DNA from: Podarcis muralis
Lineage: Eukaryota
Reading direction: 5' to 3'
DNA: 64,000 nt
Assembly (NCBI RefSeq): GCF_964188315.1
Contig: NC_135661.1
Coordinates: forward strand, 81,778,001 to 81,842,000
The translations under genes and the position numbers were made by a program. This document shows positions 3,301 to 63,902 of the stretch, in pieces (the stretch's first letter is position 1; each line of letters starts with the position of its first letter). Under the pieces are notes generated by a model. The model worked only from the letters and a program-made list of their open reading frames with translations. It was not told the DNA's origin and did not search any database.

Positions 3301-5170
3301 TGGTGAACCGGGTTTGCTTCCCCGCTCCTCCGCATGCAGCTGCTGGGTGACCTTGGGCCAGTCACACTTCTCTGAAGTCTCTCAGCCTCACTCACCTCAC
3401 AGAGTGTTTGTTGTGGGGGAGGAAGGGAAAAGGAGATTGTTAGCCGCTTTGAGACTCCTTCGGGTAGTGATAAAGCGGGATATCAAATCCAAACTCTTCT
3501 TACACAGGCACACATGCTAGTCCCCCAACAGCTTACAGCCTAAAGGAGGTGACTCATTTAAATGTCAGTGCACTATGCCAATCATTTGGGGTTCCTTTTC
3601 CAGTCAGCAGAGTCACCCAGAAAGTCTTCTTGGAGTTCAGCTCATGTGTTGGTGAATTCCCACGTGGGAATAAACACCTCACCCATTTCACTTCAGCTTA
3701 TTGCAGAATTAAAATTGCAATTTATAAAACTATTGGTCTAAGGGAAATAAAGTAAAACTATATACAGCGAATCATCTCTCCTCTCTTCACTAGAGTGTGT
3801 GAGTTGGGACCATTGGTGTAGTAGGAGATTAGCAGCTCAACTTAACGATGCTAGTTGGCATGAGAAGGGGTTAAGACCACAGAGCTGTATTCCTGATAGG
3901 CAGACCATAGAGATGTACTTGGGAGAGAGGGCTCTGTGTGATTTCATTTCCCCACCTCCCCACCCCTCTTCCTTCAACCAGCAATGAGGGCTCCGCTTGC
4001 TCCAGCTCGTACACATGTCTGAGGCTGTTTTTACTGTAAATATAAGTATTTTACCTGCATAGTTTGTTTACTGCTGCTGTTGCAGAGAACCGATGCATGA
4101 CTATAGGTAAGTAAATCATATTTTAAACTTACTTCCAAGTCTGTTGCCTGATTCTTTGTCAAGAAAGGTAAGCAAGGGGGACACAGCTTACGTTGTAGCT
4201 GGGCTTTATCCAAAGAAGGCTTCACAATTCTTATGCTTTAATTTTCTGCTAAGGATGGGATCTTAAACTCTGTTCAGCTTGTGCAAGTGGGTGCCTGGAG
4301 GTAAGGTAAAGGTAAAGGGACCCCTGACCATTAGGTCCAGTCGCGGATGACTCTGGGGTTGCAGTGCTCATCTCGCTTTATTGGCCGAGGGAGCCGGCGT
4401 AAAGGTTCCGGGTCATGTGGCCAGCATGACTAAGCCGCTTCTGGCGAACCAGAGCAGCGCACGGAAACGCTGTTTACCTTCCCGCCGGAGCGGTACCTAT
4501 TTATCTATTTGCACTTTGATGTGCTTGTGAACTGCTATGTTGGCAGGAGCAGGGACCGAGCAACGGGAGCTCATCCTGTTGCGGGGATTCGAACTGCCAC
4601 CCTTCAGATTGGCAAGCCCTAGGCTCTGTGGTTTAACCCACAGCGCCACCCGCGTCCCTGCCTGGAGGTATAAATTGCAATTCATATATCCTCTCCTAAC
4701 TAGTAAAACTCATCCCACAGTTGATAGCACCATGTTGAGAGCATCCTGCAGTCCACGGCCAGCTCTGGTTTTACTCACGGAGAAAGATGTAAGTCAGTGT
4801 TCCCACTAGCACCAATATCACAGCCAGGGACCCGATAACAGTCCCAGCGAGGACTCCAGCAGAACCAGAAGAGGAAGAAGAAGAACCATCTGAAGAATCT
4901 GAAGAGCAAAGGACTTTTTATCCAAGATTTTGCATTAAATGTTGACCATAATCTAGCCTCTCATCTCTCCCTCTAAAAGCACTAAAGGAAGGAAAGTCAA
5001 TATTTTAGAATTACCCGGCTTTGGGGGCAGAGAGGCAGCAGCATGTAATGTCCAGAAATGGATGCAGCTCTTCCTGGCTCACATAAGGTTGGCTAGAAAA
5101 TAAGCCAAGGTGTTGCTCTCCAAAAGGTGAGAAATAGTTCTTCCCCAAACTCAGTGCCCAGTCTAGTGAT

Positions 5171-19600: not shown

Positions 19601-20564
19601 GTGCAGCCTTAGTGGGACTTGCCAATTTTGCATTTCAATGCAAGTTTAAGTACATATTTAAAATGCTTCTTCTTGCAAATTAACACAATGGTCTAGTTTG
19701 AATTCCTGAGAAGGACACCACAACAACATTTGGAGGAGCATGAAATCTGGCAGTGAGTGAGGTGTAGACCTCTGCTTTAGTCTGAGAGGTGCAGATCTAT
19801 ATTAGAACTAAAAGACCAAATTCCTCCAGCATCCTCATCCTACCCCCAAGCTCAGTTGCATATAACTCCACCTGCTTCCTTCCAGAGCTCTTACCAGCAA
19901 CCCCTTTGGAAATGGGGTCCGGAGTCTGCATCCTAGTAAGTAGGAAACCAAGGGTGTAACAGGGTGGTCCCTAGCATATAAATACATGTTTTAAAAGTTA
20001 TTTTCATTCAAAACAACACCTTCCTCTAATTTGCATTCTTGAGAACTGCACCACAACATTTGGAGAAGTATGAAATCGGGTGCAGAGTTAGGTTTCGACA
20101 TCTGCATTAGTGGGAGAGATACTGTTGTTTAGTCGTTTAGTCGTGCCCGACTCTTCGTTACCCCATGGACCAGAGCATGCCAGGCACTCCTGTCTTCCAC
20201 TGCCTCCCGCAGTTTGGTCAAACTCATGCTGGTAGCTTCGAGAACACTGTGCAACCATCTCATCCTCTGTAGTCCCCTTCTCTTTGTGCCCTCCATCTTT
20301 CCCAAGATCAAGGTCTTTTCCAGGGAGTCTTCTCTTCTCTTAAGGGGATGGCCAAAGTATTGGACCCTCAGTTTCACGATCTGTTCTTCCAGTGAGCACT
20401 CAGGCTGGGAGACATACAGATCTGTGCTAAAAGACCAAATTCCTCCAGCATCCTCAACTCCCCCCAAGTAAGTCCTCCCCATTGCAGGGTGCTGACCTCT
20501 CACCTGCTAAGGGCAGCATCTTCCAGGAGACATTCCAGTCATGGGATCTGTGTGGCCTGTCCAT
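11564..20564 (-). CDS. Gene B: tandem paralog of gene A, CEACAM-like ITAM receptor, 7 exons, 331 aa
   Basis: Exons 20504-20564, 18063-18431, 16984-17256, 16146-16265, 14196-14278, 12992-13033, 11564-11611; all splice sites and the frame intact (996 nt). Confidence 0.88.
11971..12164. mobile_element. hAT-type MITE, only in duplicate copy 2
   Basis: TIR CATAGCTGTCAAC/GTTGACAGCTATG; 8-bp TSD CTCTACAA; empty site in copy 1 (~1075). Confidence 0.88.
12992..13033 (-). CDS. Gene B exon 6 (cyt2) VHPENSSSAVNTYE
   Basis: 42 nt, phase 0-0. Confidence 0.85.
14196..14278 (-). CDS. Gene B exon 5 (cyt1, IYENV)
   Basis: 83 nt, near-identical to gene A exon 5. Confidence 0.87.
15673..16026 (-). mobile_element. 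Sauria SINE
   Basis: Orthologous to 4300-4658 in the duplicate. Confidence 0.88.
16146..16265 (-). CDS. Gene B exon 4 (stalk + TM)
   Basis: 120 nt; YSSADSSSSSSGSAGALAGTVIGSLAVILVLVGTLTYVFL. Confidence 0.9.
16984..17256 (-). CDS. Gene B exon 3 (IgC)
   Basis: 273 nt; EVLSNPVLQ...CQAVNPVSNATSNPSKITIA. Confidence 0.93.
17375..17730 (-). mobile_element. Bov-B LINE 3' fragment
   Basis: Same RT C-terminal peptide, ORF 17386-17715. Confidence 0.9.
18063..18431 (-). CDS. Gene B exon 2 (IgV N domain)
   Basis: 369 nt, one codon shorter than gene A; same splice sites. Confidence 0.93.
20122..20405 (-). mobile_element. Bov-B LINE 3' fragment
   Basis: Duplicate of 8778-9060. Confidence 0.88.
20504..20564 (-). 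CDS. Gene B exon 1 (leader) MDRPHRSHDWNVSWKMLPLA
   Basis: 61 nt; donor GCAG|GTGAGA. Confidence 0.85.
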
Positions 20565-23130: not shown

Positions 23131-24584
23131 CTGGAGAGAAAACGGGGGTTCATCAGGTTGGAAACTTCAAAGTCAACCCCGTTTTGGTGTTGCTTTTATT
23201 TGCTTTCCTGGGCAGCACCAGAGAACAGTGATGGCATGGGCTGCTCCCCCCCCCCCCTTAGAAGCAGAATGCACTTTTGAAAGAGGAGCTAATAAGTGCT
23301 CTCTCGTTGGTTGGTTTATACTGGCTGGAGAATCCAGGCATCCTTTACATGGAGTTTAGGACTCGCATCCAGTGCAACACTGAGTAACTTGTTCCGTTAG
23401 TGCATGGATTTATGCTTGCTCAATGGAACTTTCTCCTGTACTCCCATGTGCCCGCCAAATCTGTTCTGGGCTTTCCCTGACCCTCCAGAGCAGATTCGAG
23501 GGAAGGAGAAGGGAAGTCCATTGTGCAAGTGTAAATCCTTCTGCTAATGGAACAAGTACCAGGGATGCCATCCTAGGGGCTGTACCAAATACGTCTACTT
23601 ACAGAAAGGCCCATTTGAATGGATTAATCTAAGTGAGTCACGCCCTATATTTTCAGTGGGTGTTTTTTCGTATCTGACGTCCAGGCGTCACACACAATGT
23701 TGTGACATCGCACGTGATCTCTGGACGCAACGCAAGCCCCCACAATCTCTTTCTTGAGTCGGCGTGCCTGCCCTCAGGTCACTTCTCTCCCACCTCTGCT
23801 CCCGCGGAAAAACTGAAAGAGAGAAAGCGTGTACACACGAGTTTCCCTTTTCCAAGGGATCTCAGTAAAAGCTGAATCCAAATAGAATGAATCTGAACCT
23901 TGGAAAGGTCATAGAGCTGAAGGAGGAAGTGGGAAAGAGCGTCTCTCTTCCAGCTTTCATTCTTCAGCCTTGTTTGCTTTTCAAGGGAAAAATGGGTAAC
24001 CATTCTCACCACCTCAGGGAAGACCTGAGGGTTGCCATTGCCTTTTGGTGACCCTCAGTTTAACTCATTTAATCTAGCCTATAAATTACCCAGGGCAGGT
24101 TCCTTTAAATTCTCTTCAATTAGAACACCAGGCTTAATGACAGCACTGAAAGGAAAGACTGCCTCGTTGCAGGGGTGCCTTACAAAGCTCATCTAAGGCC
24201 TTACCTGTCTGGAATGGCAACATTTTCATAGGCAGGTGGGTCACATGTTGGCGGTTCAGGTGCCTCAACAGTGGAAGTATTTTCAGTCCGACATCGGCCA
24301 CCTGAGGGAGAGAGGCTACTGGCAACCAAATCTTAACATTCAAGCTCTCCATTAGTTGTTACTTTTTAAGAATATACGATATGTGTTGCTTAGAGTACTG
24401 GACCAGGAGCTGGGAGACGAGGGTCCAAATCCTCACTTGGCCACCTGAAGTCCACCGAGTGACCTCGGGCCGGTCGCTATCTCTGAGCTTAACCTCCCTC
24501 ACAAAAGTTGTTGTGAGGATGAAATGCAACGGGGAAGAACCAACATACGCCACCTTGAGCTCATTGCAGGAAAAGTGGGGCAGA

Positions 24585-24639
<55 letters not shown>

Positions 24640-27600
24640 TGCTGCCCATCTGACTGGGTAGCTCCAGCCATTCTGGGTGGTTGAAAAATAAAATAAAATA
24701 GTAAAAGCACAATAGAACACCACACACTAAAAACTTCCCTGAACAGGGCTGCCTTCGAAAATGCAATAAACAAATAGACATCTGCAAAGGAGTTCTCCAG
24801 TACAAAAGGAATGCAGACAATACCTTCAGACCAAAAGGAATTTTGGGTCACACGCCACATTAGATGCCTCAATGAGGCCTTTTCAGCATTTCAGTCATAC
24901 CTCAGGTTACGTCCTCTTCATGTTACGTTCTTTCAGGTTACATCCCGTGGTGACCCGGAAGTACCGGAAAGGGTTACTTCCGGGTTTCACCACTTGTGCA
25001 TGTGCAGAAGCGCAAAATGATGTCACGCGCATGTGCAGAAGTGGTGAATAGCAACCCGTGCGTGCGCAGACGCGCTGCTGTGGGTTGCACTCTTTTAATG
25101 TTGCGAACGGGCCTCCGGAACGGATCCTGTTCGCAACCAGAGGTACCACAGTATTCCTCTGCAATAGACTATGTTAGACTGTTTCACACTATACTATTAG
25201 ACTATACCTTGTGAAGTCGAGTATACCTGAAACATTAATTTTGGCTGAATCAGTCTCCATTTTAAGTCTAACGAAATGTTCCATACAGATTCTAAAGCAA
25301 TTTCCCATTATTTGGGCTGTATGGCACATTCTAACTCTCTATTCTGTTCCTATGTTCCCACACTGCTTATTCCCCGCCCCCCACTGCCCCCAATACGGAT
25401 TTGTAAGCAACAGTCCCAGCTTTAACTTTCTAGCAATTAGTTCTAGCTTGCAGCTTTCACTGTCATACTCACGGCATCTGTAGAGCGAGACCCCCAGCCC
25501 AATCAACGAGAGGATCAAAGTCAAGACCCCAGCAGTGATCTTAGCAATGTCCTCTGCCTTCCAAGCAGCTTGACTTGAACGAGAACCTGGAATCGAAAAA
25601 GGTCCTTTTGAGGGCTGCAGTGGCCAGATTAATGGTCGTGGTTACCTTTAGAACTCAATTAACCAGTATTCTAAAACCGCTGTGCCGACTGCCGGTTTGT
25701 ATCCAGCACCAATTCAAGGTGCTCATGCTAGTGTTTAAACCCCATACAACATACCGTATTTTTTGCTCTATAAGACTCACTTTTCCCCTCCTAAAAAGTA
25801 AGGGGAAATGTGTGTGTGTCTTATGGAGCGAATGCAGGCTGCGCAGCTATCCCAGATGCCAGAACAGCAAGAGGGATTGCTGCTTTCACTGTGCAGTGAT
25901 CCCTCTTGCTGTTCTGGCTTCTGAGATTCAGAATATTTTTTTTCTTGTTTTCCTCCTCCAAAAACTAGGTGCGTCTTGTGGTCTGGTGCGTCTTATAGAG
26001 CGAAAAATACTGTAGGTCCCAAATATCTGGAAAGCTGCCTCCTTCCCTACAGACCACCCTTAGTGTTACGATTGGCAGAGGGATCTTTCTTTGTAGTTCC
26101 TCTACCCTCAGTTGTCGAGGGAGTCACCCAGGACTCGGCATTCTCTGTGGCAGCCCTCAAATTGTAGAATATCTTCCCCACAGATATATTCCTAGCACCT
26201 TCTCTATACAGCTTTTGGTGAATGCTGAAGGCGCACCTTTTTACATGGCGTGTATGTGTTTTAGGACCAACCCTATCGCTGAAGGTGGAAAATTGCAGCT
26301 GCCAGGCAGGTTTGCCCTCAGCACCTCTCATTTTGCAAAATAGGTAATCACCAACTGTGGGTTAAACCACAGAGCCTAGGACTTGCCGATCAGAAGGTCG
26401 GCGGTTCGAATCCCCGTGGCGGGGTGCGCTCCCGTTGCTCGGTCCCTGCTCCTGCCAACCTAGCAGTTCGAAAGCATGTCAAGGTGCAAGTAGATAAATA
26501 GGTACCACTCCAGTGGGAAGGTAAACGGCGTTTCCGTGCGCTGCTCTGGTTCGCCAGAAGCAGCTTAGTCATGCTGGCCACATCACCCGGAAGCCGTAGG
26601 CCGGCTCCCTCGGCCAATAAAGCGAGATGAGCACCGCAACGCCAGAGTTGGCCGTGACTGGACCTAATGGTCAGGGGTCCCTTTACCCTTTACCTTTAAC
26701 AGTCTCAAACAACCACTAATCAACATTTAGTAATCCCTAACATGTTTGAAAGCACATCAAAGTACAAGTAGATAAATAGGTACTGCTCCGGCGGGAAGGT
26801 AAACGACGTTTCTGTGCACTGCTCTGGTTCTCCAGAAGCGGCTTAGTCATGCTGGCCACATGACCCGGAAGAACTGTCTGCAAAGGTCGGCTCCCTCGGC
26901 CAGGAAAGCGAGATGAGCGCCGCAACCACAGCGTCGTTCGCGACTGGACTTTTACTGTCAGGGGTCCTTTACCTTTTTTTTTTAACATCACTTGGATGCA
27001 CACAACCCACCCACCCCAAGAGAGGAGAATAGGAATTAGCAGCATGGTCAGGCTAGGATTACTCACTGATTATGCTGGGATTGCTTATGGCGTTGCTAAT
27101 GGGGTTTCTGGCCTCGCAGGTATAGGTCCCCAATTCATCTTCGGAGGCTCCAGCTAGAGTGAGGGTTCTGTTCTGCTCAGAGAGTCCGGCTTGAGCTTGG
27201 AGGAGCTCCCCATCCTTGAACCAGAAGACTTTGACATTGGAGCTGTCCGAGGTGCTACAGCGCAAGGTGACGCTCCTGTTCTCTGCCAGCACCGATTCTA
27301 CAGGCAACAGAACTGGTCTGGAGAGGATTTCTGTACAGAGAATAGAAAGAGGCTTATCCTTGGTGAGTCCTTGTGTGTTCCAGCTCTTGCATTCTCCATC
27401 GCATATGACCATTAAGGAACCCCACCTTTAGACCATTTCCCAAGACAGGAGAGGCTCACTTGGGGAGGGGGTGAGGTTGACTAGACTCTCAGGTGAAACA
27501 CATGGGATGCTTTACTTAATGCCAGGGACTGGGGCAGAGGAAAAAATGGTGGAGACTGCCTCTCCAGCCTGACCCTTCCAGAGAAGAAGAAGAAGACAGT

Positions 27601-42610: not shown

Positions 42611-43007
42611 TTGGGGGGGGAGGAATCTCCTTGTCGCTGACCAAAACCAACTGCCCCCACCTCCAAAATGGCAAAAAGTTCTGGCTTGGTGTACAAATGT
42701 ATAGCCTGCCTTTCAGAAGAACCTCCCCAGACAGGACCACTCTACCCCAGTCACACACTGCTCCCTGTGGCTCAGTCCTCTGCTTTGTGACCTCTTCCGG
42801 TTACCAGGGAGCTTCACACTGCTGCAGGGTGAAGGAGTGGGGTGGAGGGGAGAAGAGGGGAGCTATGGATGAAGCACCCTGGGCCTAGGAGGACAGCCTG
42901 GGGTGGGTGGGGAGTGGGTGGGCTCAGCTGGGGGCCCCAGCCGCTGGCGGCAACAAGCACGGGAGGAACCTAGGCAACCAGCTGGACACAAAGGCCACCT
43001 TCCCAGG

Positions 43008-43119
43008 ATGTTCAAGCTCTTCCCATCTCCAAGAGGGGCGGGAACATCATGTGGACAGTGCCCAAAAGGTGGTGCTTCCTGTGGCCATGGGAGATCCTGG
43101 GCCCTGGTGATTCTAGCAG
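43008..43119 (+). CDS. Gene D exon 1 (37-aa leader) MFKLFPSPRG...GRSWALVILA
   Basis: Donor GCAG|GTGAGA, phase 1; same length as and alignable to the gene E leader. Confidence 0.75.
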
Positions 43120-46100
43120 GTGAGAGTTTATTTGGGACTCCGTGGGGAGGCACTAAGATCTAAAATTGCCCTTTCGAGGTGATGTAATTCTTTTGCTGTC
43201 TCGGTACAACCCCAAAATCCTGACATCATGGTGCAACAATACAACTGTTCTTTGAAATATGTAAAGAGGATATAATGTTCCCCTTTGTTGTTGTTTAGTC
43301 ATTTAGTCGTGTCCAACTCTTCGTGACCCCGTGGACCAGAGCACTCCAGGCCCTCCTGTCTTCCACTGCCTCCCGCAGTTTGGTCAAACTCATGCTGGTA
43401 GCTTCGAGAACACTGTCCAACCATCTCGTCCTCTGTCGTCCCCTTCTCCTTGTGCCCTCCATCTTTCCCAACATCAGGGTCTTTTCCAGGGAGTCTTCTC
43501 TTCTCATGAGCTGGCCAAAGTATTGGAGCCTTAATTTCAGGATCTGACCTTCCAATGAGCACTCAGGGCTGATTTCCTTAAGAATGGATAGGTTTGATCT
43601 TCTTGCAGTCCATGGGACTCTCAAGAGTCTCCTCCAGCACCATAGTTCAAAAGCATCAATTCTTCGGCGATCAGCCTTCTTGATGGTCCAGCTCTCACTT
43701 CCATACATCACTACTGGGAAAACCCTAGCTTGAACTATACGGACCTTTGTTGGCAAGGTGATGTTTCTGACATGTTCCCCTTACTAACCCCTTTTCCCAG
43801 GGGTGCAACTTTGTCAGACCTTCCTCATAGAACTCATAGTTGGAATGGGACCTGAGGATCATCTAGTCCAACCCCACCTGATTCTTGTTCTTCCCCTGGT
43901 GTTTACCTTTCCCTCCTCTTCCTCATTACACCCTGCACTTCAGTGGAAAAGTACTCCCAGCCTCTGTAGTCCCTGCCCTTAAATGTTACGATCCAAAATA
44001 CATGGAATGAAAGGAAAGGGCATTGAGAGGGTGGAGGAAAAGAACAAACTCCGGTACTGATCCTAAGTTAAATGCTCGGTTAGCTCCCAACCAACCGCTT
44101 TCTCAGAAGTGACTGTACCATAGCCAGTGCTGACCATATCGGTGCTGGGAGTGGGGGAGTCGGGGAACGTCCTTCTCAAACCCACCAAAGAAGGGGCTAC
44201 AGTCACATCAGACCCTCCATGGGAGGCATGCTCTCCATGACACAACCCCTTGCAGAGCAGATGGACCTGCCATTGTGGGCTAGTCATAGCGGCCACTTTC
44301 TTGGGCTCCATGATCACTCCAGATGGTGACAGCAGTCACAAAATTAAAAGACGCCTGCTTCCTGGGAGAAAAGCAATGACAAACCTAGATAGCATCTTAA
44401 AAAGCAGAGACATCACCTTGCCAACAAAGGTCCGTGAGGGCACAAGGAGAAGGGGATGACAGAGGATGAGATGGTTGGACAGTGTTCTCAAAGCTACCAG
44501 CATGTGTCTGACCAAACTGTGGGAGGCAGTGGAAGACAGGAGTGCCTGGCATGCTCTGGTCCACGGGGTCACGAAGAGTCGGACATGACTAAATGACTAA
44601 ACAACAACATAGCAGCCATGGGGGCTTTGCCATAAAATATTTGAGGGGGCTTCCCCCAAAAAAACTGATGGGTACTGCCATTCAAAAGCTTTGTGTGTGC
44701 TGCGTCATGTGATCGACTCTGTGGGGCAGGACTTACTGTATTTTCCCGTATATAACACGCCCCCGTGTATAACACAACACCTATTTTTTGGGACTCCAAT
44801 TAAGAAAATGGGGGGAGATTGCCCAGAGGGTATTTTTTTTGTTTTTTGTTTTGCTTTGGGGGGGGGTGCCCAGACTGGTTGAGCTTTTTGGGGGGCAGAT
44901 TGCCAACAATCACTCACCCGCCTGACCTGCCTGACTGCAGCTGTCAATCGCACGCCTTGCAAAAAAACAACAATCGTCTGCCCAATCCAGCAGCCTTGAA
45001 AATAAGGGATCAGCAGCCAAAATAAGGGATTTTAGTCAACCAGCTGAAATACGAAGTTAAAAGGGACCAGATAATTTGGGAGAGCAGTGCCGGTTTTTAG
45101 CCCTTTGTTTCCAGAGGTTGCTGCTCAAGACACCAGCTGATGAAACGCTGCAATTAAATAACTACAAGCGGCAACCACTTTTTCGCGCAAAACGAGGTCC
45201 AAGCTACAAAGATGCTGATGCAGTTCTGTATCTTTTCTCTTGTGCTCAATCTGCAGCTCTCAGTTCCATCAGGCAGGGCGGGAGGAGGGGGGGGGGAATA
45301 GCGCCCGAAGTAAACCCGCAGATCAGACCATCTATGCTAGTCTACCACTACAAATCTATGGGAGAAGCACTTGTGGTCCTTCCTCCTCTTTCCCCCTCTA
45401 TGGTTAGCCCTTGGAACACCTGCCCACGCCTCCGCCTCCTCTCTCTGAACTGCTTTCTCTATGGTTGCCCTCGCTCTCCTCTCAAGGCTCCTCAGCAATG
45501 GCTGCCCATCTCATCCGGGTCCTTCGGCAGCGCAGCCGCAGTTCGGCCTAGCGGGAGCCGCGGCGGCGATGGGCAGAGGGGAGGCCCCAGGCAGAGACGC
45601 TCAGTTCAGCAGCCGCAAGGAGGATGGCGGCGGAAGGGCCCGAGGCTCCCGCCAGACCTGGCTGAGAGGGGCTCCCGGGGGCCGAGGCTGGTGAGAGGAG
45701 GCTGGAGGGGGGCGGGCCAGACAGCCAAGCAACACAGTTGGAGCCTCCCTCCTCCCCCTTTTTTTTAAATAAATTTTTTATTGATTTTCCAACATAAAAT
45801 AAACACAATACACTTCACAATACACCAACAAACAAAAGACATATAAACACGTATAATTTCATAACCTCCTTTTCTTAAGCTTGTTTCGCCGACTTCCCCA
45901 TGCCTCCCTTTTCTGCATCCCTATTTTAAGATTTTCTCAGCAACCCCTCACTTCATTAACATATTTGTTCGCTTTCTTTAATCCTACCTCTCTTACCCAA
46001 TCATTTACAGCTGTAATTCTATTTTTTCCAATACCCTTGACATTTTAACACTCATTAATTTTATAACAATTCTTAAGATAATCTTTGTACTTCTTCCAGT

Positions 46101-58690: not shown

Positions 58691-59879
58691 ATACAGTGGT
58701 ACCTAAGGTTACATATGCTTCAGGTTACATACGCTTCAGGTTACAGACTCTGCTAACCCAGAAATAGTGCTTCAGGTTAAGAACTTTGCTTCAGGATGAG
58801 AACAGAAATTGGGCTCCGGCAGCGCGGCGGCAGGCCCCATTAGCTAAAGTGGTGCTTCAGGTTAAGAACAGTTTCAGGTTATTTGTTATTATAATGTTGG
58901 ATATGTAGCACACACGCAACAACAAAATGCTTTTGCGGTCCTGGGAGTTCCAAGCCAGCTGAGAGGCACGTGCTGCTCTGTAAAAGGAAAAATTCACCAG
59001 GCACACACACACACACACACACATACAAGGCTAGCAGGGCAGTACTGCAGAGCGAGCACAGCAGCCCAAAACCCACATGGCCGGGGGGGGGGGGCAGCAC
59101 TTACCTCACCAGCAAAGGTCCTGGAACCTGGAAGGAAAACAAGTGAGCCTGGGGTCATCGGTTCCTTATGCTGGCCCTCGCCCCACCCCAGGCGGCTGCC
59201 CATAGGCCTGCCGAGATGGGGGCAGGGCAATGGCCTCCCTGGAACACAGGTGGGTGGTTTACCTGTCCCAGGAGCCCACATAGTGTTGCAAACCCCGCCC
59301 ACCCAAGGGACGGGGCGAGCGAATATTGTTTGTTATTATAATGTTGGATATGTTGTGTTAAAAAAGGTAAGAACTAATAAAAAAATATATTTAAAAAAGA
59401 AGAAGAAAAAAGACGCCACATCTGCTAAACTGGATGAAAGGAGACTTGATTGTCAGAGACTTCAGGAGGACGTTGAACTCCTTTTAATTTTATTTTTTTA
59501 ACACTCCTTTGTGGAGAGACGGTACATTTTCTCAGAGTGACCCAAGTCTGGATGTCCCTATTATCATTGGAGAAATGTTGGAAGGTATGGAATTATCCAG
59601 CCCTCGAGCCGTCTGTATAGGGAAGGGTTTTTAAAAATATATATATTAATGTTTTTATATATGTTGGAATCTGCCCAGAGCAGCTGGGGCAACCCAGTAA
59701 GATGTGTGGAGTGTAAATAGTAAAATTATCATTATGGAATGGGACGTCTTTATTTTCATCAGAGGGTATGGGATCCGTTTTCAAAACAAGGCTTCCAATG
59801 TGAAATGAACGTAATGAGGTCCGTCCCCTCTGCACTATACATTTAAAGCAACGTTGCACCACTTGAAATAGCCCTAAAA

Positions 59880-60234: not shown

Positions 60235-60717
60235 TTAATAGCCATAAGGTAAAGGTAAAGGTACCCCTGCCCGTACGGGCCAGTCTTGCCAGACTCTAGG
60301 GTTGTGCGTCCTATGGTTGGGTGCGTCCTATAGAGCGAAAAATACAGTATGTGTTTTTGTTTTTAAATCAAACGCAGCACTTCGGATATCTACAGTGTCC
60401 AACCTCTATAGCACACAGACTACAGGGACTATCGGAGTGATGTATGAGTCTCTAGTTTGCCTGTTTCAAAGCAGGAGAAAACTCATGGGGTCTCCCTCAG
60501 CTCATGACTCATATCTCTGCTTTATGACCTCTTTCTCCTGTTACCTGGGAGTTTGCACTAGGGGCTAAGGAGGCTCCCAAGCAGTGAAACATCTTGGGCT
60601 GAGGGGGAGAGGAAAAGCAGGGATGGGTGTCTGGGCTCAGCTGGGGATCCCAGTCACCACCATCAAAGAACTTGGGAGGAACCCAGACCCCAATCTGGGC
60701 ACGGAGAACCACCCAGG

Positions 60718-60829
60718 ATGCCCGTAAACCTCCCACCTGAAAGAACAACACGGACATCATGCAGACACCATTCTATAGCTTGGGGCCCCTCCAGATGTGC
60801 AAGATCCTGCCTGGTTCTGCTTCTAGCGG
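60718..60829 (+). CDS. Gene E exon 1 (37-aa leader)
   Basis: CCAGGATG context as in gene D; 112 nt; phase-1 donor. Confidence 0.78.
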
Positions 60830-63800
60830 GTAAGAGATTTTTTTTTGGGGGGGGGTTGTCTCTGGGGAACAGAGATCCTGGCTTGATGATGGTCTGGGGA
60901 GAAGAGACCCAGAAGGACTGAGATCTATTTATTTTAAAAAATACATTTATCTATAGCATGTGGCCAGCATGACTAAGCCGCTTCTGGTGAACCAGAGCAG
61001 TGCACGGAAATGCCGTTTACCTTCCCGCTGGAGCTGTACCTATTTATCTACTTGCACTTTGATGTGCTTTCGAACTGCTAGGTTGGCAGGAGCAGGGACC
61101 GAGCAATGGGAGCTCACCCTGTTGCGGGGATTCGAACCGCCTACCTTCTGATCGGCAAGTCCTATGCTCTGTGGTTTAACCCACAGCGCCACCCACATCC
61201 CTTAGCTATAGCTATAGCTATATAATATTCTTTTACAAAATTGTACACACATAGATCCTAAACATAACAGGACTAACAAAATATGGGTTACTGGGTCGGG
61301 ACCTAAAATACCAACTGTCTTGTTTTACAGTACAGTCATACCTTGGTTCTTGAAAGGAATCCATTCCGGAAGTCCATTCGACTTCCGAAAACGTTCAAAA
61401 ACCAAGGCGCAGCTTCTGATTGGCTGCAGACGTTTGGCTTCCAAAAAATGTTCGCAAACCGGAACACTCTCTTCCGGGTTTGCGGCGTTCGGGAGCCAAA
61501 ACATTCGAGTCATAAGGCGTTTGAGAATCAAGGTACGACTGTACATACGTAATAATGAGATAATTACCGTAAACCTGTAAAATGAGTTCTTCAGCAGTTC
61601 AGCTTAGAAAACACAGAGTAATAGGAGGGAGCGAATGAGTAGTTCCTGCTTATCTATGCCATATTGAAATATAGGTTGCAGGTATTTCTCGTCTCTCTGT
61701 TGCTTTGTTTGTATATTTAATAAAATCACAACACACTGTGTAGACGTATCTGGTTTTTTCTCTCTCCACCATGGCACCTTTTCCCCCAAACAGCTTTTCC
61801 ATTACAGCTGCTTGCCAGACTATATTATACCAGGGCTCAATATTCATTAACGGCAAGGTTTTCCCCATTTCTGGCTATTGCCATTCTAGTTGCTTTCAAT
61901 AAATGTGTTATTAATTCCTTCCTTCTTAATTGGTCCATATCTGTAGTAATGAAGTAAGACTGTTACTGGGGTTATTGGGATTGTCTGAGCTACAATCTCT
62001 TTTAAAATTTCATTCCAAAATTGTTCCATTTGTGGACAGCTCCACCACATAAGTTGGTGTATAGACCTATAATTTGGCATCCATAGATGCCTCAGTGTTA
62101 AATACTATCCATTCACAATTTTTAATAAGCATTCCCTGGTAGTTGCTGACAAATATTTATATGGTGCTTTTGTCCATAAATTGCTCAATTTATCCTCTTC
62201 AATGCTTATATCTCAATTTAATTCACACCAGCTTTTTAGATTTTGCTGGGAGCAAAATGGGTTCACGAAAAGGGTTTCGTATAAAAGGGAATTTCATCCC
62301 TTAGCCATTATACGATCTCTTGTCAGCTTCTTTTCATATTCTGCTAATTTCCTTGTAGCTTCATTTTTCATTTGTGCATTTAGAAGAAATGATCTCAACC
62401 AATATCCTAACAGTGAAGTACAGCTGAGATCTAATACTGAGAGAGAAGCTGTTTTATAAGTTCTACGGCCACCTCAGTATAAAAAGCCATGCCTCCCAAA
62501 TTCTGAGATTACAATCGTATATTTTTAAAATATAAAGTTGATCGAAAATCCCCCTTTATTTGTTCTCAGGGGTGTAAGCTGGGAAGCCCCTCTTGGTTGT
62601 AAAATTGCAGGGTATGGTCTGAAGGCAGGTGGGGCCACCACTAACTTGCTGAGGCCTAGTAGGTTTCAGTCTGGTCAGTGGCTGAATTGTTGACCACCTG
62701 AGAGCCTCATGTATGGCACTTTGGGTGCCATGACAGAAGAAAGGCAGGATTTAAATATAGGAGAAAGAATAAATGAAATTACGAGGGTTTCTGTCTCCAT
62801 TACTTCTGCCTGTTCTTGGCCTGTTGAACGGAGTGACTTTCTCCTCCCCATTCCACAGCCTCCATCTTGAGCTCTTGCTTCCTGTTGACTCAAGCTGCCA
62901 GAAGGGTTAAAGCTCGGCGTCCTCATGTGAAGAAAATGGCCGCTCCTAAGCCTCCTCGTTTGCCTCAGGAGGCTGCCACGACGAATGCTTCTGTTCTTCC
63001 TCCAGCAACAACCGGGGCTCCCCCCGCGACAGCAGCTGCAGCTGCTGAAACAACCACAGGGACTCTCCCTGCAATGACAAAGGCAACAACGAACGGGACG
63101 TCTCCTGCAACGACAAACGGGACTTCTCCTGCAATGACAAACGGGACTCTCCCTGCAGTGACAAACTGGACTCTCCCTACAAGGACAACTGGGGCTCCTT
63201 CCATTCCTCCTGCAGTGCCAACTAAGACTTCTCGTCCCCGTCCTCCTCCCCGTCCCCCTGCCCCTCCACCACCTCCCCGTCCGCCCGGTCCCCCTCCCCC
63301 TCCTCCTTCAGTGACAACTAAGTCTCCCCCTCCCCCTCCTCCCCCTCTCCCTCCAGCAGTGTCAACTAAGGGTCCTCCAGCCCCTCCTCCTCCCCACCCT
63401 CCTTCCCTGAGCCCTCCTGCTGAGGGGACACCCAAGAGTCCTCCTCCTCCCAAAATCTCTCCTGCCTCTCCTGGAGCTCCCAGTAGTCCACGACCAACCG
63501 TTCCTGGTGGTCCCGGTGTTCCCACTTCGAAGCGTCCTAAGCCCGAGGATCCCATGCTACCCCCCAGAAGGGATATCATTATCAGTTTTTACCCATCGAT
63601 TCCGGTCATAGACGAGGACATCCTACTCACCTTGGATGGAGATATCAAAGGCTTTGTGGGCTGCCTTTGGAAGCGAGGGGTGGGCCCTATATCGAGGACC
63701 ATTGTGCTCTACTATACGCAGCCCAATGTCACGCTGCAATACATGTTTGGCCATACCGGTCGGGAAATTCTTAATCAGGATTGCTCTCTCCTCATCACCA

Positions 63801-63902
63801 AAATGACCTCTGAGGACACTGCTGTATATGAGGTAGAGATGGAAGTGTGGAGGAATGGGACAGAATACTCTCTCGTTGGGCGAAAATATTTGGAGGTTAC
63901 AG
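60718..63902 (+). CDS. Gene E (5' part): CEACAM-like protein with Thr/Pro-rich N-terminal insert before the IgV domain; continues beyond window
   Basis: Leader exon 60718-60829 (MPVNLPPER...RSCLVLLLA, G|GTAAGA) and 1044-nt exon 62859-63902, phase 1-1, open frame. Confidence 0.85.
60957..61202 (-). mobile_element. Sauria SINE, partial
   Basis: 5' two-thirds of consensus. Confidence 0.85.
61333..61541. mobile_element. TcMar-like MITE
   Basis: TA|CAGTCATACCTTGGTTCT...AATCAAGGTACGACTG|TA. Confidence 0.82.
61700..62460 (-). mobile_element. L1-clade LINE fragment, degenerate
   Basis: HQLMWWSCPQMEQFWNEI similarity. Confidence 0.6.
62859..63902 (+). CDS. Gene E exon 2 (signal end + Thr/Pro-rich region + IgV N domain)
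   Basis: Acceptor TTCCACAG|CC, donor CAG|GTAAC; ASILSSCFLLTQA...PPRR-DIIISF...GCLWKRG...HTGRE...DCSLLITKMTSEDTAVY. Confidence 0.92.
63085..63180 (+). repeat. 24-bp coding tandem repeat (TTNGTSPA-type, 4 units)
   Basis: ACAAACGGGACTTCTCCTGCA units in gene E exon 2. Confidence 0.85.

Follow-up and report, generated by a model that had tools for sequence, protein, structure and literature searches.

An Enlarged N Exon in a CEACAM Gene of Podarcis muralis

The N domains of CEACAM proteins mediate homophilic adhesion and are bound by bacterial adhesins; their usual place is the exposed tip of the molecule. In Podarcis muralis, one gene of a CEACAM cluster (here called gene E) has an N exon in which 225 low-complexity residues stand between the end of the leader and the N domain. 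This raises the question of whether such an insert is a real part of the gene and, if it is, what it might do in the protein. The window, i.e., the whole stretch of DNA analysed, comprises 64,000 nt of contig NC_135661.1 (positions 81,778,001 to 81,842,000, forward strand), and coordinates are those of the window unless another locus is named. The architecture of gene E is real at the gene level, and it has been annotated by NCBI yet is undescribed. The most probable interpretation, held with some reserve, is that E encodes a non-signalling CEACAM membrane protein with a lineage-inherited N-terminal extension that serves as a steric or glycocalyx element.

The N exon of gene E lies on the forward strand at 62859–63902 and forms one open exon of 1044 nt, bordered by an AG acceptor (62857–58) and a GT donor (63903), with phase 1 at both ends. 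The N exons of the paralogs were re-measured as 372 nt (A), 369 nt (B) and 372 nt (C), in agreement with the contrast drawn in the first-pass annotation of this DNA, and all of the elements named there were found in the exon. In order, these are the last 12 residues of the leader (SILSSCFLLTQA, 62861–62896), representing its last third and with a likely signal cleavage after TQA; a basic head of 13 residues (ARRVKARRPHVKK, 62897–62935); a Thr/Ala-rich, mucin-like part of 92 residues (62936–63211); polyproline blocks spanning 88 residues (63212–63475); a non-repetitive Pro/Gly/Lys linker of 32 residues that ends in PPRR (63476–63571); and a CEACAM-type IgV (N) domain of 110 residues (63572–63902) with N-glycan sequons at 63725 and 63854. 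The basic head has no counterpart in the downstream gene F (described below) or in other species, and neither F nor other lineages share the RR of the linker. DNA similarity to paralogs A–D is confined to the leader-end part. The same leader-end start of the N exon has been described for reptile CEACAM N exons (PMC13278318).

The insert of 225 residues is rich in proline (33%), threonine (14%) and serine (7%), and is strongly basic, with 26 K+R versus 5 D+E. Tandem repeats with periods of 24 nt (4.4 copies), 36 nt, 30 nt and 48 nt (2.1 copies) were detected by Tandem Repeats Finder, the 24 and 36 nt repeats in the Thr/Ala-rich part (63049–63188) and the 30 and 48 nt periods in the polyproline blocks, so that the insert displays the Pro/Thr/Ser-rich tandem repeats of mucin-type PTS domains. 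Five NxS/T sequons are present in the Thr/Ala-rich part, at 62984, 63092, 63116, 63140 and 63164. The polyproline blocks follow one another as AVPTKTS-RPRPPPRPP..., SVTTKS-P7, AVSTKG-PPAPPPP and TPKS-P4; each is introduced by (A/S)V(P/T/S)TK, and their general form is (T/S)TK(S/G)Pn.

A 45-codon open reading frame (ORF) with the look of a signal peptide (MKLRGFLSPLLLPVLGLLNG..., 62773–62910) lies across the boundary of intron and exon in a frame other than that of the N exon, and is probably a chance occurrence.

Gene E Is a CEACAM-Family Gene

The IgV domain of E was compared with known structures by Foldseek. The best matches in the PDB were the N domains of CEA and of CEACAM1/3/6/8 (E-value ~6e-9, TM-score normalised to target 0.79–0.84), and the best PDB match by sequence (phmmer) was murine CEACAM1b (E-value 1e-4). 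A CEACAM family hidden Markov model (HMM) scored the domain at 91 bits, like the intact paralogs, compared with 41 bits for a degenerate exon (exon X); the Pfam V-set model remained sub-threshold (20.4 bits against a cut-off of 26 bits). AlphaFold modelled the domain with a predicted local distance difference test score (pLDDT) of 93–98. Five other CEACAM-like N exons occur in the window, placing gene E inside a CEACAM cluster, and the neighbouring gene D is named CEACAM3 by NCBI (XP_028595894.1). Foldseek and the exon layout together bear out the earlier statement that the N exon holds the insert, with the end of the leader in front of it and a true CEACAM-type IgV domain behind. Gene E is a single-IgV transmembrane CEACAM-family gene.

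Its closest architectural counterparts are the single-N-domain transmembrane CEACAMs, such as P. muralis gene D of the same cluster and the reptile CEACAM1-like genes (PMC13278318). With these it shares a leader split over exon 1 and the N exon, phase 1 introns, a CEACAM IgV and a following transmembrane (TM) exon, but it differs from them in the 225 low-complexity residues between leader and IgV, and in a tail without the tyrosine of an immunoreceptor tyrosine-based activation or inhibitory motif (ITAM or ITIM). Most of 81 relatives begin their IgV at residue 30–60. A 2026 preprint about reptile CEACAMs deals with this cluster, and the words proline, mucin and extension are absent from its main text (PMC13278318); a literature search for a CEACAM with a proline-rich, mucin-like or N-terminal extension returned nothing relevant.

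The NCBI model of gene E ('uncharacterized protein LOC144328616 [Podarcis muralis]', 409 aa) contains the whole Thr/Pro insert in its coding sequence (CDS). By protein search it is identical to the N-exon translation from residue 26 on, and it is collinear with the genome across the insert. Beyond the window end, this model continues with a TM exon and four small cytoplasmic exons, the latter conserved in P. raffonei. The cytoplasmic tail is short and has neither an ITAM nor an ITIM, since there is no tyrosine in it.

A leader exon 1, outside the NCBI CDS, was located at 60718–60829 on the forward strand; it begins with an ATG at 60718, comprises 37 codons and one further base, and is followed in phase 1 by a GT donor at 60830. 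When joined to 62859 it gives a continuous ORF with a leader of 50 residues, including the hydrophobic core CLVLLLAASIL and the end TQA. The exon shows 68% amino-acid identity to exon 1 of gene F (locus L001, 19759–19869), and its homologues include the annotated leaders from P. raffonei F (P0004/P0082) and gene D (P0090). This conservation suggests that the 60829–62859 junction is used in E. Another candidate for exon 1, at 59549–59590, is similar to sequence near genes A and B, but was dropped as it has the look of a shared repeat and no leader-like ORF.

An upstream ATG at 60623 (60623–60731) has a counterpart in P. raffonei F that is read in the frame of the leader, the annotated N-terminus of that protein being MGVWAQ.... 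In E the ATG opens another frame, which reaches a stop just beyond the leader ATG, and it would act as a short overlapping upstream ORF if the transcript starts upstream of it.

Gene F Carries a Second, Longer Extension

Gene F lies ~13 kb downstream of E, outside the window, and has the same architecture with an even longer polyproline tract. In the P. muralis locus L001 its exon 1 is at 19759–19869 and its N exon, of 1089 nt, at 23760–24848, or ~7 kb and ~11 kb past the window end. The N exon encodes, in order, the leader end, a Thr/Ala-rich part, seven VTPKAT(L/V)Pn units, an acidic linker and the IgV, and its proline runs reach up to ~25 consecutive residues. The coding frame is the only forward frame without stops in the F extension. 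The gene table of L001 lists no gene besides E, and P. raffonei was the only species in which protein searches turned up a protein of the F type.

That ortholog is LOC128418307, isoform X1 of which is named 'formin-2-like'; leader, extension, IgV and TM are all annotated. The P. raffonei N exon is 984 nt long (L002, 13912–14895) and is set apart from that of P. muralis by whole-codon indels only. The C-terminal part of P. raffonei F, used as a query, matched only its own cluster, and a protein search with the junction piece 63419–63901 of gene E, aimed at short transcript-derived fragments, gave no matches.

E and F were compared by Smith-Waterman scores against shuffles and by an HMM. Their extensions resemble each other in residue order beyond what composition explains (z 5.9, 0/500 shuffles), although BLASTP of E versus F gave no alignment, probably through its composition correction. 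As the extensions are alike in order while the two IgV domains share only 41% identity, the extension is older than the E/F duplication.

Related Extensions in Iguanians and Snakes

The first-pass annotation had proposed to look for the insert in other squamates. An exhaustive HMMER search found relatives in iguanians and snakes; Phrynosoma, Sceloporus, Ophiophagus and Pantherophis all have a low-complexity stretch placed as in E, and Anolis has a short one. Contrary to what had been implied, the insert is not unique to gene E, being matched by extensions in F and in these relatives. The extension of Phrynosoma is ~85 aa long with TKK and Pro repeats, that of Ophiophagus ~45–50 aa (SRPPPRPTTPPPPPRPPPP), and that of Anolis ~22 aa. 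The CEACAM4-like gene of Sceloporus undulatus has an extension of at least 100 aa (L004, ~3640–3740) with an assembly gap of 400 N inside it; the extension is seen in the locus, and the annotated protein (P0021), an N-terminally truncated model, starts at the IgV. Likeness in residue order beyond composition was also found between E and Ophiophagus (z 3.2) and between E and Phrynosoma (z 2.8).

The Pantherophis guttatus relative, named 'forkhead box protein B2-like, partial' (L003, 3735–4420), has its leader end and PPTTRRP-type repeats in one frame, and the IgV and the annotated 'HYPSSSS' repeats in another. The frame break may be an assembly error or a true frameshift, so that either the protein is partly read in the wrong frame or the gene is frameshifted.

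A tree was built from 56 IgV domains. In it, the eight that belong to this group fell together on one side of a branch with moderate support (79 by the Shimodaira-Hasegawa-like approximate likelihood ratio test, SH-aLRT). Seven of the eight come from extension-bearing proteins, and the eighth is the truncated model of Sceloporus. This branch is nested in a well-supported clade of single-domain members. The extension would thus be an inherited trait of one squamate CEACAM lineage that includes lacertid E and F and the iguanian and snake relatives, within which its length (~22 to ~240 residues) and sequence keep changing. Ordinary N domains have a short Thr-rich linker after the leader, e.g., ETTG or DTIATK in paralogs B and C, and we infer that the extension probably grew from such a linker by in-frame tandem duplication and slippage.

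Open Frame and Splice Signals

The coding frame of the E insert contains no stops, compared with 6 and 9 in the other two forward frames and 2–7 in those of the reverse strand. When the sequence was shuffled in 60 nt blocks, which keeps local composition, the coding frame was open in 0.5% of shuffles for E and in 0.18% for F. The openness of the E exon is beyond chance. It suits an extension that would be translated as part of a maintained gene, and it is no proof that the sequence of the extension matters.

The true donor of the E exon scores 8.9, and no donor-like site inside the exon reached a score of 5. Acceptor-like sites, in which CAG follows a polypyrimidine tract, are present at five places inside the insert (63005, 63215, 63311, 63356 and 63359), because Pro-Pro-Ala/Val is coded as CCN CCA G... 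Judged by coordinates, each of them shares the phase of the true acceptor (62858).

Sampled words of the insert were looked up in an index of sequencing runs. P. muralis DNA runs contained 80–100% of them. Four runs from a second species, labelled 'RNA?' by guess, contained 14–19% of the words, some of them words from the insert only, giving weak evidence of transcription in a relative.

Predicted Structure and Proposed Role

AlphaFold predicted no regular secondary structure over residues 1–210 of E, with a pLDDT of 37–52 in the Thr-rich part and 63–84 in the polyproline part. Together with the composition and the sequons, this agrees with the earlier description of the insert as Thr/Pro-rich, non-globular and supplied with N-glycan sequons. 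A TM helix was predicted at residues 336–367, ~15 residues past the IgV. The IgV would therefore be membrane-proximal, and the free N-terminus would consist of an extended chain of ~225 residues. Mucin-like and polyproline-II chains extend by ~0.25–0.31 nm per residue, and the chain could reach tens of nanometres, far past the 4 nm IgV.

After cleavage of the leader, E would be a type I membrane protein. Its free N-terminus would carry a Thr-rich part, predicted to be glycosylated, and then polyproline-II segments, all above the IgV. We infer that such a chain may be a steric or glycocalyx element, restricting or tuning access to the IgV, and not a propeptide that is cut off. An N domain under a long, length-variable glycoprotein or polyproline tail would be a different design from one at the tip, and could be a non-signalling spacer, shield or decoy.

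The nearest known layouts differ from that of E in part. TIM proteins likewise are type I membrane proteins with one IgV and a Thr/Ser/Pro-rich, mucin-like segment, which in TIM lies between the IgV and the membrane. In E the order is reversed (mucin/polyproline, IgV, TM), as the first-pass annotation had pointed out, and the IgV is of the CEACAM rather than the TIM type. MUC1-type repeats, the IgA1 hinge and proline-rich salivary proteins resemble E in having tandem, in-frame, length-variable Pro/Thr/Ser repeats that are predicted to be extended and glycosylated. The repeats of E differ from those of variable number tandem repeat mucins and polyproline hinges in being short, degenerate, strongly basic and N-terminal to an Ig domain. 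The RPRPPPRPP-like stretches of E and of the snake relatives recall PR-39 and the bactenecins, a likeness of composition only. Unlike these Pro/Arg-rich antimicrobial peptides, E has no cathelin proregion, no conserved release site and no sign of secretion.

Alternative Explanations

Several observations weigh against an inherited extension with a steric or glycocalyx role. Three of the five sequons of E stem from one recent 24 nt repeat, and the F extension has no N-glycan sequon. The IgV of E, besides its low identity to that of F, sits on a very long branch (1.67). No E ortholog in other lacertids appeared among the protein search results, and no gene is called over the downstream exons of E in the P. 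raffonei locus L002, which starts ~2.8 kb downstream of the expected position of the E N exon. None of the nine older P. muralis RNA runs listed in the index (Logan contigs) contains the stretch; six raw-read RNA runs of 2026 fall outside the index. Selection to express the downstream IgV and TM would suffice to keep the frame open, so that openness is no proof of a function of the extension itself. The NCBI CDS of E begins at an internal ATG (62936), the first codon of the Thr/Ala-rich part, and has no signal peptide, suggesting that the evidence used by NCBI did not support the junction between exons 1 and 2. Lastly, two isoforms of P. raffonei F fall short of the genomic polyproline tract, X1 by 57 codons and X2 by 70, and X3 starts at a Met downstream of the insert and lacks a leader. 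The shortfall in X1 and X2 may reflect exonic skipping, allele length differences or editing of the models.

The isoforms of F, the internal start of the NCBI CDS and the five in-phase acceptor-like sites could also mean that most of the insert is missing from the mature mRNA or protein, through use of internal acceptors with the exon 1 donor, through skipping of repeats, or through a downstream translation start. Such a loss is unlikely as a general explanation. The NCBI model of E runs collinear with the genome across the whole insert, no donor-like site reaching a score of 5 was found in the exon, use of an internal acceptor would delete the second half of the leader, and the frame has stayed open over 675–726 nt in two long-diverged paralogs, E and F. 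Partial skipping or allele length differences are real possibilities.

It is similarly improbable that gene E is a duplicate that is decaying or little used, its extension being tolerated slippage junk with no function of its own. This would fit the long IgV branch, the missing annotation of E in P. raffonei, the older RNA runs and the Pantherophis relative with its leader end and IgV in different frames. It fits poorly with an IgV that scores 91 bits where the degenerate exon X scores 41 and that is modelled at a pLDDT of 93–98, with leader, TM and tail exons that are intact and conserved in P. raffonei, with a frame whose openness is unlikely by chance, and with an architecture kept in three squamate lineages.

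A stronger form of the inherited-extension interpretation is that the squamate CEACAM lineage has kept a hypervariable Thr/Pro/Arg-rich 'antenna' since the ancestor of lacertids, iguanians and snakes, and that this antenna is the working part of the molecule. As a glycosylated polyproline tether of cationic character it could capture or repel microbes, or set the spacing between membranes, and it would evolve by repeat slippage under host-pathogen pressure. This is a long shot at present; if true, it would give Ig-family receptors a novel means of diversification.

Least convincing is the proposal that E is a pro-receptor, the extension being a propeptide or shield that is cut by a proprotein convertase at PPRR|D or in the RVKARR of the basic head, unmasking the IgV and maybe releasing a Pro/Arg-rich peptide: a dibasic RR does stand directly before the IgV, and Arg/Pro-rich runs occur in the snake relatives too, but the head and the RR are found only in E, being absent from F of both Podarcis species, Phrynosoma, Anolis, Ophiophagus and Pantherophis, and there is no cathelin-like or other processing context. 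The corresponding junctions read ...ESPGGE|ITIDL in F, ...APQTS|IIHIS in Phrynosoma and ...GPAVP|ISITM in Anolis, and those of the snakes have no dibasic site. Furin expects a basic residue at P4. PPRR has no basic residue at P4 or P6, RVKARR is followed by Pro at P1′, and a conserved R-X-K/R-R site does not occur at the junction. Proteolytic release, as put forward in the first-pass annotation, is therefore very unlikely and finds no comparative support.

Consequences for Annotation

The inherited, steric extension remains the favoured reading of gene E, and low-complexity extensions of this kind mislead annotation, as seen in the names 'formin-2-like', 'forkhead box protein B2-like' and 'uncharacterized' given to members of the group. 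The models of other members are without leader or extension, and F is absent among the annotated proteins of all searched species except P. raffonei.

A region elsewhere in the window (42919–43133, forward strand) shows weak DNA similarity to the leader-exon region of E. It lies ~3.9 kb upstream of the N exon of gene D, and is probably the leader exon of that gene.

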